From contig OZ365110.1 in assembly GCA_977030845.1 (NCBI GenBank), positions 41,168,001 to 41,232,000 of the forward strand: a DNA stretch of 64,000 nucleotides, written 5' to 3'. The notes under the pieces are model-generated. The model worked only from the letters and a program-made list of their open reading frames with translations. It did not search any database and was not told where the DNA came from. Positions 41,442-46,626 of this stretch are shown piece after piece (positions within the stretch are counted from its first letter, which is position 1; each line of letters opens with the position of its first letter). The translations under genes were made by a program, and so were the position numbers. Origin of the DNA: Fimbriosthenelais zetlandica. Its lineage: Eukaryota.

Positions 41442-41465
41442 GACTTTTATAGCGGCTAAAATTAG
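41442..41465 (+). promoter_or_regulatory. Distal composite element with a MEF2-type site (CTAAAATTAG at 41456-41465)
   Basis: gacttttatagcggctaaaattag matches the MEF2 consensus CTA(A/T)4TAG; CCAAT at 41511; near-duplicate of 42224-42248. Confidence 0.7.
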
Positions 41466-41531
41466 CATCTACACGCATGGCTGAACCTTGGAATCAACAT
41501 ACAAGTAGAGCCAATGACGGCGGACCAAGTC

Positions 41532-41548
41532 AGGTCAGTGTGAGGTCA
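41532..41548 (+). promoter_or_regulatory. Perfect DR5 nuclear-receptor element (RARE type)
   Basis: AGGTCA-gtgtg-AGGTCA, ~1.05 kb upstream of the KLF2/4 ATG. Confidence 0.6.
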
Positions 41549-42223
41549 CATTCACGCGGCTTTCCCCAAAATGTAGACACATGGTCTCACACACACCTAC
41601 ACATTATAGACGCACGTCATCACTGCTCCAGGCTTCCGCATGTCTATGCTTTTCCAGGGCGCCCTGCTCCAGTGACCTTATTTATGCATAGCATGTGTAC
41701 ACTAGTATCTAGAGGCCGCTCTATAGATGGTTCCATCTCGGTGCAAACTTTGTGGCCCATTTTCAGTGCAAATAAAATTAAATTTCTCACAGCCGAACAG
41801 AGCAGAAATAATTTGTTATGCACTGGCCTTCACTTTATGCCTGTGTTAATTAATTCGGAACTTTAATTAACGTTTTGAAATTAAACAGATATTGCATTAA
41901 TAGAAAGAAACGTATATAGATTTCGATGTTCGAGGTCGTGCGTCTATAGTGCATATGGGATGAGTACTTGGTATAGGCTAGTGGTGGAAGAGGACTTTTC
42001 AGGACAGGATAATAATTAAATTTGATGATAAAATGTTTCCATCTGCTACCATTAACGCAGGAATATATAATGGTCATTTGCAAAATTTGCTGATCTATTT
42101 TTTCAGAATTGGTAGGGAAATTACAAGGGAGTTTTGTGGGAAAATATGAGCGGGGGAGCAGTGGCCTACGTCTTCACACGGTGGCGGTCTGACTCGATCT
42201 GCCAGCAGCCTGAATGCCTGGCG

Positions 42224-42265
42224 GACTTATATAGCGGTCTAAAAATAGATTTTCTCTCGACCAAT
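42224..42265 (+). promoter_or_regulatory. Proximal KLF2/4 promoter element: CTTATATA-GCGG-MEF2 (CTAAAAATAG at 42239-42248) plus CCAAT box (42261)
   Basis: gacttatatagcggtctaaaaatag...accaatcagcg; canonical MEF2 decamer ~350 bp upstream of the predicted ATG. Confidence 0.75.
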
Positions 42266-42600
42266 CAGCGTTGAGGAACAGAGGGATCCCGGTCATACTG
42301 CAGAGTAATAGCAATTTACTAGAAATTCCATCGTTATTCACTCACAAATGGGTTCCTAGATGGGTAGAAGAGAGTCACGCTTCTGATTTGGAGAGTTTTT
42401 GGAGAGCTATAAGTAATTTTACACGAGGGATTCCGATCAGTTGTTGATTTGATCTTGACATAGAGACATTTGTGGATAGAGCAATAGATTGACAAACATT
42501 TTCCAGCCTGCAAAGCAGCAAAGGACTTTTGCATTGGTGAAAGTTTGGACTTCGGTTGTTGATATATACATTCAGCCTCCCCAGGTTTCATCAAGAGAAA

Positions 42601-42693
42601 ATGACTTCAATGGTTGATCCTTTACTTACTTCTACTAACGACATGTATTCTTCAGTGTACAACAAATCAGAGGATACCATCGACCTACAAAGT
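42601..42693 (+). CDS. KLF2/4: KLF2/4 first coding exon (MTSMVDPLLTSTNDMYSSVYNKSEDTIDLQS)
   Basis: ATG at 42601; 93 nt; strong AGT|gtaagt donor; phase 0 joins VWADVESFL to give [13 protein letters not shown]; an upstream non-coding exon is possible. Confidence 0.75.
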
Positions 42694-44393
42694 GTAAGTA
42701 TTGACAACCTTTTTCAAGCATTTACTTTTTTAAAAGCATTTTCGCAAAATATTAATGTTACTCTGTCAATACAGCAATAGTTGGATATCAGGTGAGGAAG
42801 TGATTGTAAATTAAGCTAGGTGACATTATTTAGATGTGAAGCTAATAATTAGTGGTAGAAACCAGGTGGTAGCAGCTGGGGATGGACAGACAGTGACTGA
42901 CATAAATGATTTATTTCCCCATGTCCATCAAGTAAGTATTGTGTCTCATAAGATAAAGGACATTAAACATCGATTCTCTATTATTATGAAACGCACACTT
43001 GGTTTTAATAAAACTCACTCTTTTGATCACAACAAAAGCCGCGACTTTAGTACATTAGATAGGCTGGGAGACAGGGAGCGCGTGGTGGTATAGCGTTTGT
43101 TGGCAATCCTACGTCAGAGATTCCCACCCGCTTGGGAAAGGAACATAGAACGCTACACTTGTGTCCCGTCTCTGCATGGCCATGGCCGTTCAAGCGAATG
43201 TTCCACCAGAACTTTCATGAATACTCTCCGCTTGAGATAGTTTACATGCCTAAATCATCCTATAAGCTGTTTATTGACTCAAAAAACAACCATGCCTTAC
43301 AGCCCTTATCATTCAAAATGTCGCTAAGTGCAGCGAGAGTGAATATTTATCGATTATTTTGTGCGCAGATGACTTTTGAATGACTGAGTGTTGTGGCGCC
43401 AAAAATACAGCACTTAATCATCGTCTGCTGGTGTTTGGTTTTGGAGAGGTGGGGGATTTCCTCCCAACTCCTCTCAGCGGTACAGTACCGCCCCCTAGTT
43501 GATGCGACTGAAACTATTGCGGTATAGCATCGTATAGTCAAGATGAGTTTCCCCATAAACTAACCTAGTACCGTTAGCACAGTATCCAAACATGTGGTAC
43601 CTTAATATGGGGTACTAGTCTTCATTGTGGGGCACTGTTTCAAAAGTAAAATTACCAATGCAAAGTCTATCGCTCAGCCTCTATGTCAGAAGCCAAGTGT
43701 ATACACATGGCACCTGGTTTGTTGCCGTATGTTGGTTGTGTAACTTGACTGTAGGTGTCGCTAGCGTCTGTAAGTTTGGGACGCAGCTTAGCTGTGGTTG
43801 GCTAATGGGGGATGACTGAGACACAGGTGAGAGACTGATTTACAATAAAAGAAAAGGTGCGCGCTCCAGCTGTCACATTACAATCCCGGGAGTTAAAACA
43901 GTAAGTCATCGAGCTTAACACTTAGGATTAGTAGGAGAATCTTAGAAGCATTAACATGGAAGGCGTAAACAAACAGGGCACCATGTGCCATGTCATGAAG
44001 GTTAGTCTTTGTAACTAATATACCAATAATATTGGTGGACCTTTATTTTAGGTTTCGTTTCATATTTACTCATCTTTAAATTTACTTTAAGGATGAGAAC
44101 TTTACCTGTTTTCTAGGAAAAGGAAGTTTTGATTTTTAAAAATTATTATCTTCCTTGGATAATTAAATAGGGTTCACCACTTGTTGTGAAGTACATGATT
44201 GTATACTTCCCTGAGATATGTTTTAAGTCATTCGGTTGTAAGGCAGTTTGAGGGTCTAGAAAACTAAAATGAACATAATTGCATTATAGTTTATATTGCG
44301 AGAGTAGGATGATGTTTGGAGATTGATATATTTTTTATGTTTTCATTTGTATGGCCGAGTTATTTATGTATGTTTTTATTTGTATTTTTTTAG

Positions 44394-45728
44394 GTGTGGG
44401 CTGATGTAGAAAGTTTCCTCTACCAGGATTTGCTTGGTACAGGTTTGGATGCTTCCATCACAGCACCTCTGGGGGGCGTGCCCGGCTTCGCCTCCCCCTC
44501 CTCCTCCACCGACCCAGCATCACCTGGTTCCAGCTATGGCAGTGGTGGGTCAGCTTATTGTGGGAGCCCAGTCTCCCCCCACCAACAGGTCTATGATGAA
44601 CTTCTGGACTTTGAATTCATCCTGGCTAACTCCATGAACGAGATGTGCTCGGGTTCATCAATGTATCCCGAGGATTCAGGCTTTAAGATTCATGGGCAGC
44701 AGTTGAGCTTAAAGCGGGAGACACCTTCTCCAGGTGCGCCCCTGTCTCCAGCCAGCGCCTCCACATGTGGAAGTATGACACCTCCCTGTGCCACGCCCAG
44801 TACCGGTGGCACCAGCAATACCACCACACTACCTGACTTTAACACTGCTTTTTATGACATGCCAGAAATGAAGTACACCCCTCCCACAGTCCAGCAACAG
44901 CAGCAAGCCATGCAAACCTCCCAAACTCACACCCCCAAAATCCAGGAATACATCCAAATGCCAACACAGTGTGCCCAACAGCAACAACAGAACGAACAAC
45001 AGCAACAACAACAATCACAGCATGAACAATTATCGCAGCAGCAGCAACAACAGCAATATTCTATGTACACAAACTCACCACTGACCACTCAATTATCGCC
45101 ACCCACTGGTCAGTTATCACCTGGCGGTCAGATGTCACCTGTGTCCGGTCAACTCTCACCCCCAGCCTCTCCTGAAATACTGCATGCCCAACAGCAACAA
45201 GGGTCTGCATCCGAGGAGGGCCAACAATACCACCCTATGAGCATGGACATGATGCCACTACCTGCACATATGATGCATACTAAGACCTCTAACCAACACC
45301 TTCTCATGTCCCCAGGAGCAGCTCCAGGTGGACCCCACACAAACGGTCTCATCACTCCTCCCGGCTCGCCTGAGCTGGTCGATCTGCTCATGCCACTCGG
45401 AGCACCCGAAGCCGGAGCGCAGCAACCGAAAAAACGCGGGCGACGTGCATGGGGACGCAAACGTCAGACAAGCCATACGTGTTCTCATCCAGGCTGCAAT
45501 AAAACCTACACCAAGTCCTCCCACCTCAAAGCTCACCTGCGAACGCACACTGGAGAAAAGCCATACCATTGTAACTGGAAGGGTTGTGGCTGGAAGTTCG
45601 CCCGATCCGATGAACTTACCCGACACTACCGCAAACATACCGGAGATAGGCCTTTCCAATGCCACCTGTGTGAACGCGCATTCTCCAGGTCCGATCATCT
45701 TTCACTCCACATGAAACGCCATATGTGA
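44394..45728 (+). CDS. KLF2/4: Kruppel-like factor 2/4, main exon with three C2H2 zinc fingers
   Basis: tttttttag acceptor (the GTG is not a start). [23 protein letters not shown]...[54 protein letters not shown] is near-identical to the vertebrate KLF2/KLF4 fingers. LITPPGSP motif present. Confidence 0.97.
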
Positions 45729-46426
45729 AGTGGGACTTTTTGCATATAATATAAAAACTCTCATCCCCTACACACTTACACACACGCTACCAATATTGGT
45801 GTCTCGTCGATGGTGTTGAGATTTTCTACTAAAACCAACTCCTACAGACTCACAAATTGTCCTTGCATGAAATGGGTGTTGACTTTTTCAACAAAAAAGA
45901 AAGTCAATTCAATTAAACTTTCTAAGATGAGCTACAAGGACTTGATAAAAAGCTCTAGACATTTTTGTACTGCCATTTTTGTACATTGCAAGCTGACGAT
46001 GCTTCAAAGACATTGTCACACATGAACATGAACGGTCAGGAAGAAATGTTGAACGCTAGTGCCTTGTTGGCGAGTTCTCAAGGACAGTGGTTGGGGCGCC
46101 ATAGACTGGGTTGGTACCTCTCGAGCCCCAGTAAAGGGCCGCGTGGCCCTTCTTATGTTCTGCTACATAAGGGGCGGTAGAAGAGGTGCTCTGGATATGG
46201 CCAATCCCATTCCAAGAAAAAAAACAGGGCGCAATGCCCTCCTAAGTTAACCATCCGATGTATTCCCTCCGTTCAATAATTAAACCGGATGGGTCGGCGA
46301 CTACCGTGAGTCGTGCATCGGACGGTAAAAATGTCTGCTAAATGTTTAGTGACGTGGTGAAAGCGCACTTCTAGTTAACAGGGAAAGTTTTCAATGAAAA
46401 TTCTACCCCAGTCTTCAAGGTGGTGA

Positions 46427-46448
46427 TGCCTTAAAGATTAATGCCTTA
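46427..46448 (+). promoter_or_regulatory. Two tandem miR-124 7mer-A1 seed matches in the KLF2/4 3'UTR
   Basis: TGCCTTA at 46427-46433 and 46442-46448. Confidence 0.5.
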
Positions 46449-46616
46449 TAACAAGGTCCTATTGTATACATGTATGTATTCCCATGCTTACAACCCGTGC
46501 AGGTCACGAAAGCCTTGCAGATCATATCACTTGTTATATAGTTATGAAAATGATCGTTATTGTATAGAGAAATGTTTATGTATATAACTATTTTAAAGGA
46601 GTAACATCAACTCACT

Positions 46617-46626
46617 AAGTGCAATA
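46617..46626 (+). promoter_or_regulatory. miR-92/25-family 8mer site in the KLF2/4 3'UTR
   Basis: AAGTGCAATA is complementary to nt 1-10 of miR-92a (UAUUGCACUU). Confidence 0.6.

Follow-up and report, generated by a model that had tools for sequence, protein, structure and literature searches.

Among the regulatory elements described so far, the closest counterpart of the sequence reported here is the MEF2-TBP double motif of vertebrate KLF2, which is found in the promoter of this gene as well as in its −41 kb and −66 kb enhancers (bioRxiv 10.64898/2026.02.04.703710). We describe a double motif of this kind, together with a site for the microRNA (miRNA) miR-92 in the 3′ untranslated region (UTR), at a Krüppel-like factor gene of the KLF2/4 class in Fimbriosthenelais zetlandica. 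The gene lies in a stretch of 64,000 nucleotides (contig OZ365110.1, positions 41,168,001 to 41,232,000 of the forward strand), which we call the window and whose own numbering is used throughout.

The vertebrate KLF2 motif was earlier described as "A/T-rich motif A" together with the MEF2 site in the shear-stress- and ERK5-responsive region; a separate TATA box at −31 lies proximal to it, and its halves are separated by a spacer of 3 bp (range 2–4). Mutation of either half abolishes most of the enhancer activity, TBP binds to the motif in a flow-dependent manner, and binding of MEF2 to the mammalian element is documented by electrophoretic mobility shift assay (EMSA) and chromatin immunoprecipitation (ChIP); the double motif is extremely rare genome-wide, yet it is also present at KLF4, KLF6 and KLF7 (10.64898/2026.02.04.703710). 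As cited there from Sohn et al., the TBP half of the KLF2 promoter copy is needed for activation by ERK5-MEK5. In the mouse, the Klf2 MEF2 site reads ctaAATTtag (PMC4108324). On the post-transcriptional side, the targeting of mammalian KLF2 and KLF4 by miR-92a is validated; it acts through seed sites in their 3′UTRs, as does the repression of MEF2D (PMC9916909 and work cited there). The deepest species considered in the preprint is the zebrafish, and invertebrates are not mentioned except for a Drosophila precedent, a fat body switch based on Mef2-TBP co-binding (Clark et al. 2013, as cited in 10.64898/2026.02.04.703710).

Our literature search retrieved no description of the double motif or of the miR-92 site of KLF2/4 in invertebrates. 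The kinds of element are already known; what appears to be new from the loci compared here is their invertebrate, bilaterian-wide occurrence. Based on this comparison, the KLF2/4 gene of this spiralian is probably driven by an ancient TATA-like/MEF2 element and repressed by miR-92, and in this lineage by miR-124 as well.

The TATA-like/MEF2 double motif upstream of KLF2/4

The promoter region of the window contains the following elements:

42227–42248, plus strand: proximal double motif, consisting of TTATATAG (42227–42234), the 4-bp spacer CGGT and the MEF2 site CTAAAAATAG (42239–42248)
41445–41465, plus strand: distal double motif, consisting of TTTTATAG (41445–41452), the 3-bp spacer CGG and the MEF2 site CTAAAATTAG (41456–41465)
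42261–42268, plus strand: CCAAT box of the NF-Y type (CCAATCAG), 12 bp 3′ of the proximal MEF2 site
41511–41515, plus strand: CCAAT box of the distal module, downstream of the distal double motif
42408–42442, plus strand: predicted, motif-based core promoter with TATAAG at 42408–42413 and the initiator TCAGTT at 42437–42442, A+1 being at 42439

Both MEF2 sites, CTAAAAATAG at 42239 and CTAAAATTAG at 41456, match the consensus YTA(A/T)4TAR, CTAAAAATAG being a perfect MEF2 site. When the first half of either double motif is read on the opposite strand, it is a canonical TATAWAWR box, at 42226 and at 41444, respectively; we take this half to resemble the HOMER consensus CCTTTTAWAGSC. The distal copy lies 783 bp upstream of the proximal one and is identical to it at 22 of 24 positions, plus one indel. 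Relative to the predicted transcription start site, the proximal double motif spans approximately −212 to −191 and the distal one is located at about −994. Since a separate TATA box and initiator lie downstream, spaced by 30–31 bp and both kept in the closest available relative (locus L001), the proximal composite is most likely an upstream element distinct from the core TATA box.

We also considered the distal copy as part of a larger tandem duplication, but the best local alignment of about 90 bp was only 2.8 standard deviations above shuffles and hence not significant. A perfect nuclear-receptor element of the direct-repeat-5 (DR5) type, AGGTCA-gtgtg-AGGTCA, is found at 41532–41548 on the plus strand, 67 bp 3′ of the distal MEF2 site.

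MEF2-consensus 10-mers alone are not rare, with 19 of them in the 64-kb window, which speaks for a fortuitous meeting of 7-mer seeds and short A/T-rich motifs near a KLF gene, devoid of function. The distribution of the composite among species stands against such an explanation. KLF2/4-type loci of the window and ten other species, 329.7 kb altogether, were scanned on both strands with the relaxed pattern TATAS-N3-5-CTAWWWWTAG. Across these 11 loci the pattern matched 13 times, in every case on the sense strand and 173–1153 bp upstream of the ATG, and nowhere else. The matches are distributed over ten of the 11 species, with two each in the window, Saccoglossus and Patiria and one each in L001, Lingula anatina, L006, Haliotis, Owenia, Tubulanus and at Callorhinchus KLF17. 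Beyond the window, nine animals from six phyla thereby carry the composite, the carriers including an annelid, a nemertean, a mollusc, a brachiopod, a hemichordate, a sea star and a chondrichthyan with its KLF17 gene.

No composite-bearing species departs from the full MEF2 consensus or from its flanking C and G, and the core upstream of Callorhinchus KLF17 is even identical to the ctaAATTtag core of mouse Klf2. In nine species a CCAAT box, forward or inverted, comes 3–57 bp after the composite, or after the proximal one where there are two. In the alignment of the window with L001 the composite falls into a conserved island, its distance to the ATG being 371 bp in the former and 359 bp in the latter; the CCAAT box is conserved in L001 as well. 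Second copies located 260–800 bp upstream were also seen in Saccoglossus, Patiria and Tubulanus, and weaker ones in Haliotis and L006, so that the duplicate of the window belongs to a recurrent architecture. A first-pass annotation of the window had reported the composite and its duplicate and had found them reminiscent of vertebrate KLF2/KLF4 control; both copies are present at the coordinates listed above and match the MEF2-TBP double motif, and the composite is conserved across phyla.

In three species the double motif is followed, after a few tens of bp, by CArG-type boxes, namely CCATATATGG, CCAAATATGG and CCATATACGG, at about position 9790 of L020 (Owenia), 9640 of L007 (Saccoglossus, distal copy) and 9790 of L026 (Tubulanus). 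They suggest a possible input of SRF beside MEF2 at these loci.

Within the 447-Mb genome, the strict pattern TTWTATAS-N3-5-CTAWWWWTAG has 83 matches, about 60 of which represent one repeat family, and two more (L009 and L010) share their flanks and look like another repeat. The KLF locus is the sole place genome-wide with two strict matches close together. The other strict matches belong to the repeat family, to the second, probable repeat or to low-complexity sequence, and the four stretches examined around such matches contained no zinc-finger coding sequence. The relaxed pattern had zero matches in approximately 120 kb of unselected control loci of the same genome. Five other KLF zinc-finger exons of this genome were inspected over the 20 kb that precede them; no convincing composite was present there, and a looser pattern returned only one antisense match and a TATATAG tandem repeat.

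Some of these repeats are worth recording in their own right. The dispersed family, present in about 60 places (e.g. C1:5777951 and C10:12658505), carries the composite mimic TTATATACTAGCCTATTTATAG, and the repeat shared by L009 and L010 carries TTTTATAGAnnTCTAAATWTAG. Tandem TTATATATAGCGG units at positions 1444–1480 of L035 (contig C37, ~228.5 kb) resemble the first half of the composite and form an array that precedes another KLF-like zinc-finger exon (C37:237029) by about 8.5 kb.

miRNA sites in the 3′UTR

Downstream of the KLF2/4 stop codon, the following features were assigned:

45729–47445, plus strand: predicted 3′UTR of ~1.7 kb, collinear with the L001 UTR as far as a conserved AATAAA at 47422
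46619–46626, plus strand: miR-92 family 8mer GTGCAATA, which reads A-GTGCAAT-A over 46618–46626 and is the sole miR-92 site of the UTR
46059–46065, plus strand: miR-124 7mer-m8 site GTGCCTT inside the 11-nt island AGTGCCTTGTT, at the same offset from the stop codon in L001
46427 and 46442 (span 46427–46448), plus strand: two miR-124 7mer-A1 sites TGCCTTA, position not conserved
47012–47018, plus strand: fourth miR-124 site, 7mer-m8 GTGCCTT, not conserved

Taken alone, the single miR-92 site in the 1.7-kb UTR of the window is not significant (P = 0.31), as would be expected if it had arisen by chance; its weight comes from conservation across species rather than from the count in one species. 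We ranked all 16,384 7-mers by the number of species sharing them, taking nine UTRs (window, L001–L003, L006–L008, L019 and L020) up to 1000 nt beyond the stop codon. GTGCAAT came first, being shared by eight of the nine, and the overlapping AGTGCAA second. In 500 dinucleotide shuffles GTGCAAT was found in about one species on average and in five at most, so that the observed sharing exceeds all of them. The word is an exact miR-92 7mer-m8 match, often extended by an A at position 9 and by A1, and it also occurs in the UTRs of shark KLF17 and Tubulanus. In the window and L001 it is embedded in the common island TCACyAAGTGCAATA, 891 and 902 nt from the stop codon, respectively. Across species, the composite is present in 10/11 and the miR-92 site in 8/9, the latter being conserved bilaterian-wide. 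As the composite and GTGCAAT both lie within conserved islands of the L001 alignments as well, we regard a chance co-occurrence as vanishingly improbable.

The genome also encodes the factors that would read these sites. There is one clear MEF2 gene with MADS and MEF2 domains, and mir-124 is encoded too (Rfam score 60.8 bits). Four mir-92 hairpins (L013–L016) are clustered at G000:C10:39944003-39950512, on the same contig as KLF2/4 and 1.26 Mb away from it. Their 3p arms read A/UAUUGCACUyGUCCCGGCC and the hairpin z-scores range from −2.3 to −6.3; what led us to accept the hairpins was the identity of the mature sequence together with the fold, the mature arms and folds being canonical.

The elements could be functional and conserved and nevertheless have other readers: TBP/TFIID, another A/T-binding factor or SRF/homeodomain proteins acting without MEF2 on the composite, and an RNA-binding protein recognizing GTGCAAT. 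The TATA-like half and the MEF2 site are both A/T-rich, and TBP is able to bind MEF2-like sequences, as in the Xenopus MyoDa promoter. CArG boxes adjoin the composite in several species, and the wide sharing of UGUA-type 7-mers among the UTRs resembles a constraint exerted by RNA-binding proteins. Retention of the complete MEF2 consensus with its flanking C and G speaks against these readers, as does the MEF2 binding of the mammalian element in EMSA and ChIP; in addition, GTGCAAT corresponds exactly to the miR-92 7mer-m8 and mir-92 is encoded four times in the genome. We therefore consider readers other than MEF2 and miR-92 to be clearly unlikely.

For miR-124, seed matches are strongly enriched in the UTR of the window, with four observed, 0.24 expected and none of 2000 shuffles reaching four. 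The L001 UTR has two sites (P = 0.024) and L003 a weak one; the UTRs of Lingula, Saccoglossus, Patiria, Haliotis, Owenia, Tubulanus and Callorhinchus have none. A literature search found no support for a miR-124 targeting of KLF2/4 as a vertebrate vascular interaction. It is plausible that the miR-124 sites are a lineage-specific addition outside the conserved circuit. The claim that the gene keeps a whole vertebrate circuit, made in the first-pass annotation, is supported for the MEF2 and miR-92 sites and not supported for miR-124, whose sites are confined to the window, L001 and, weakly, L003 and for which the presumed role in vertebrate vascular KLF2/4 control found no literature support. 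The two miRNAs, which had been regarded as the output of the circuit, are moreover inputs to KLF2/4.

Besides the miRNA sites, UGUA-containing 7-mers (TTGTATA, TGTACAT, GTTTGTA and TTTGTAC) are among the most shared words of the nine KLF2/4 UTRs in the first 1000–2000 nt, which hints at conserved elements of the Pumilio or CFIm type. Further islands common to the window and L001 are a GGGCCG...GGCCC hairpin (46136–46150), TAAGGTGCTT (47096–47105), CTAGTCAT.TACA (~47198) and the region of the polyA signal (47395–47435). The TAAGGTGCTT island presumably offers only a 6-mer match to miR-29.

Gene model and phylogenetic placement

The coding region and a candidate alternative start were modeled as follows:

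42601–42693, plus strand: KLF2/4 coding exon 1, 93 nt encoding 31 amino acids, with the ATG at 42601 and the donor GT at 42694
44394–45728, plus strand: KLF2/4 coding exon 2, 1335 nt encoding 444 amino acids plus the stop codon, with three C-terminal C2H2 zinc fingers
43983–44000, plus strand: candidate alternative first coding exon 1b in intron 1, encoding MCHVMK, with the donor GT at 44001 and in frame with exon 2

Exons 1 and 2 are joined in frame to give a product of 475 amino acids. Pfam detects zf-C2H2 and zf-H2C2_2 at residues ~360–443 of exon 2, where the fingers are connected by KLF-type linkers at the extreme C-terminus. The finger region (92 amino acids) is 92–99% identical to that of the orthologues, and the full-length relatives of the protein, from Lingula, molluscs and Saccoglossus, are named KLF2, KLF4 and similar. 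Because the next-best zinc-finger exons of the 447-Mb genome are only 57–71% identical in the fingers, the gene can be assigned to the KLF2/4 class, and by these sequence criteria it is the single KLF2/4/17-class Krüppel-like factor in the genome of a spiralian, annelid-like animal. Open reading frames around the gene, including the one at 41477–41866, gave no Pfam match.

A maximum-likelihood tree was calculated from KLF2/4-type proteins, other KLF subfamilies lying outside its scope. In this tree the protein groups with those from two ENA assemblies (supports 100/100 and 100/97), and this clade joins an annelid weakly. It is placed outside a clade of echinoderms and hemichordates, which is itself supported with 99/99. 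As the protein groups with spiralians, the water-vascular epithelia suggested in the first-pass annotation as a site of action cannot apply.

The region of the candidate exon 1b (43956–44002) includes a Kozak-like CACCATG start at 43980–43985. Its 24-nt core CACCATGTGCCATGTCATGAAGGT is identical in L001 (9615–9640), where the surrounding intron is not alignable, suggesting a putative second, intronic promoter at exon 1b.

Origin of the cassette and comparison with known systems

By extension from the mammalian experiments, a MEF2 dimer would occupy CTAAAAATAG (the CTAWWWWTAG half) and TBP or another A/T-binding factor the TATA-like half beside it. With NF-Y on the CCAAT box as a partner, the two could bring about a signal-dependent activation of the TATA/initiator core promoter about 200 bp downstream, while the distal copy might be a second promoter or a shadow element. 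Through its one 8mer, miR-92 would then dampen or sharpen KLF2/4 expression, and miR-124, with up to four sites, might exclude KLF2/4 from neurons in this lineage.

Several points weigh against a MEF2-driven, miR-92-repressed KLF2/4 gene of ancient origin. The transcription start site, the extent of the UTR and the use of the distal copy are predictions from sequence, and A/T-rich composites could serve TBP or other factors without MEF2. The spacer between TATA[G/C] and CTA varies from 3 to 5 bp over the 13 instances, a value that shifts with the placement of the motif boundaries. On all four mir-92 hairpins the Rfam mir-92 model stays below its gathering score. Among the species, the KLF locus of the insect Ischnura has neither the composite nor the miR-92 site, and the L006 UTR lacks the miR-92 site. 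Finally, the sole vertebrate locus in the comparison is shark (Callorhinchus) KLF17 and not a true KLF2 or KLF4; a homologue search seeded with it gave only proteins of the KLF17/18 type.

Taking these points into account, we still consider it very likely that the double motif and the miR-92 site form a bilaterian-ancestral KLF2/4 cassette, ancestry being meant here at the level of sequence. The simplest reading of the species distribution is that activation of KLF2/4 by MEF2 and its repression by miR-92 date from the protostome-deuterostome ancestor and are thus older than the endothelium, in which case vertebrate flow sensing would have been co-opted from an existing module. Few cis-regulatory elements or miRNA-target pairs are traceable by sequence between protostomes and deuterostomes, and here both are found for one gene. 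That the TATA-like half is functionally essential receives independent support, because its place beside the MEF2 site has persisted over hundreds of millions of years.

A further-reaching proposal is that the cassette already acted as a signal-dependent switch in invertebrates, possibly responding to flow or stretch, a functional role which we hold to be rather unlikely. The first-pass annotation had gone beyond this and envisaged that ERK5, MEF2, KLF2/4, miR-92 and miR-124 might make up an entire mechano-response module, at work in coelomocytes or in the epithelia of the coelom or the water-vascular system. The cis-elements conserved here are indeed those that mediate the response to MEK5/ERK5 and flow in mammals, and genes for MEF2, miR-92 and miR-124 are all in the genome. 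The animal is, however, a spiralian without a water-vascular system, and the miR-124 sites are confined to its closest relatives. In mammals MEF2 also acts on KLF2 outside the endothelium, in T cells and fibroblasts (10.64898/2026.02.04.703710; PMC4108324), so that conservation of this input does not imply mechanosensing. A complete module of this type would appear very unlikely.

Returning to the ancestral MEF2- and miR-92-controlled cassette, one consequence is that the "shear-stress code" of vertebrate KLF2 gains a pre-endothelial origin. Should the proposed co-option be true, endothelial shear sensing in vertebrates would not be a vertebrate invention but a co-opted module more than 550 million years old. 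An element of 20 bp is easy to probe in tractable marine invertebrates, and the ancestral role of MEF2 at KLF2/4, which may lie in quiescence, in immune or epithelial homeostasis or in muscle, is open to direct study.

The Drosophila Mef2-TBP switch, as far as it is described in the citing preprint, resembles the spiralian locus in that MEF2 and TBP are jointly implicated at an A/T-rich element of an invertebrate. There, however, a single shared motif is used at immune and metabolic genes, whereas the element described here is a spaced double motif at a KLF gene; the switch furthermore belongs to an insect, and the sole insect KLF locus examined, that of Ischnura, does not have the composite. 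The miR-92 site agrees with the mammalian miR-92a-KLF2/KLF4 pair in being a canonical seed match (here an 8mer) in the 3′UTR of the orthologue, conserved across species. While in the literature searched the mammalian pair is documented for mammals only, the site found here is common, at the sequence level, to spiralians, ambulacrarians and shark KLF17, which implies a miRNA-target pair of bilaterian age.

Compared with the vertebrate KLF2 double motif, the element described here occurs in invertebrates, beyond the species covered by the preprint. Its spacer of 3–5 bp, by our own boundaries, is not exactly comparable to the published 2–4 bp, and its second copy is located 0.26–0.8 kb upstream instead of tens of kb as at vertebrate KLF2. 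The vertebrate motif is moreover found at KLF4, KLF6 and KLF7, whereas here the zinc-finger exons of other KLF paralogues had no convincing one when 20 kb of their upstream sequence was inspected. In both systems, on the other hand, a TBP-type motif adjoins a consensus MEF2 site across a short spacer at a gene of the KLF2/4 class, distal to a separate TATA box, with several copies per locus and few elsewhere in the genome. As judged from these features, the composite of the window agrees with the published element in what it contains and in which order, and also in its distance from a separate TATA box, its multiplicity and its rarity.

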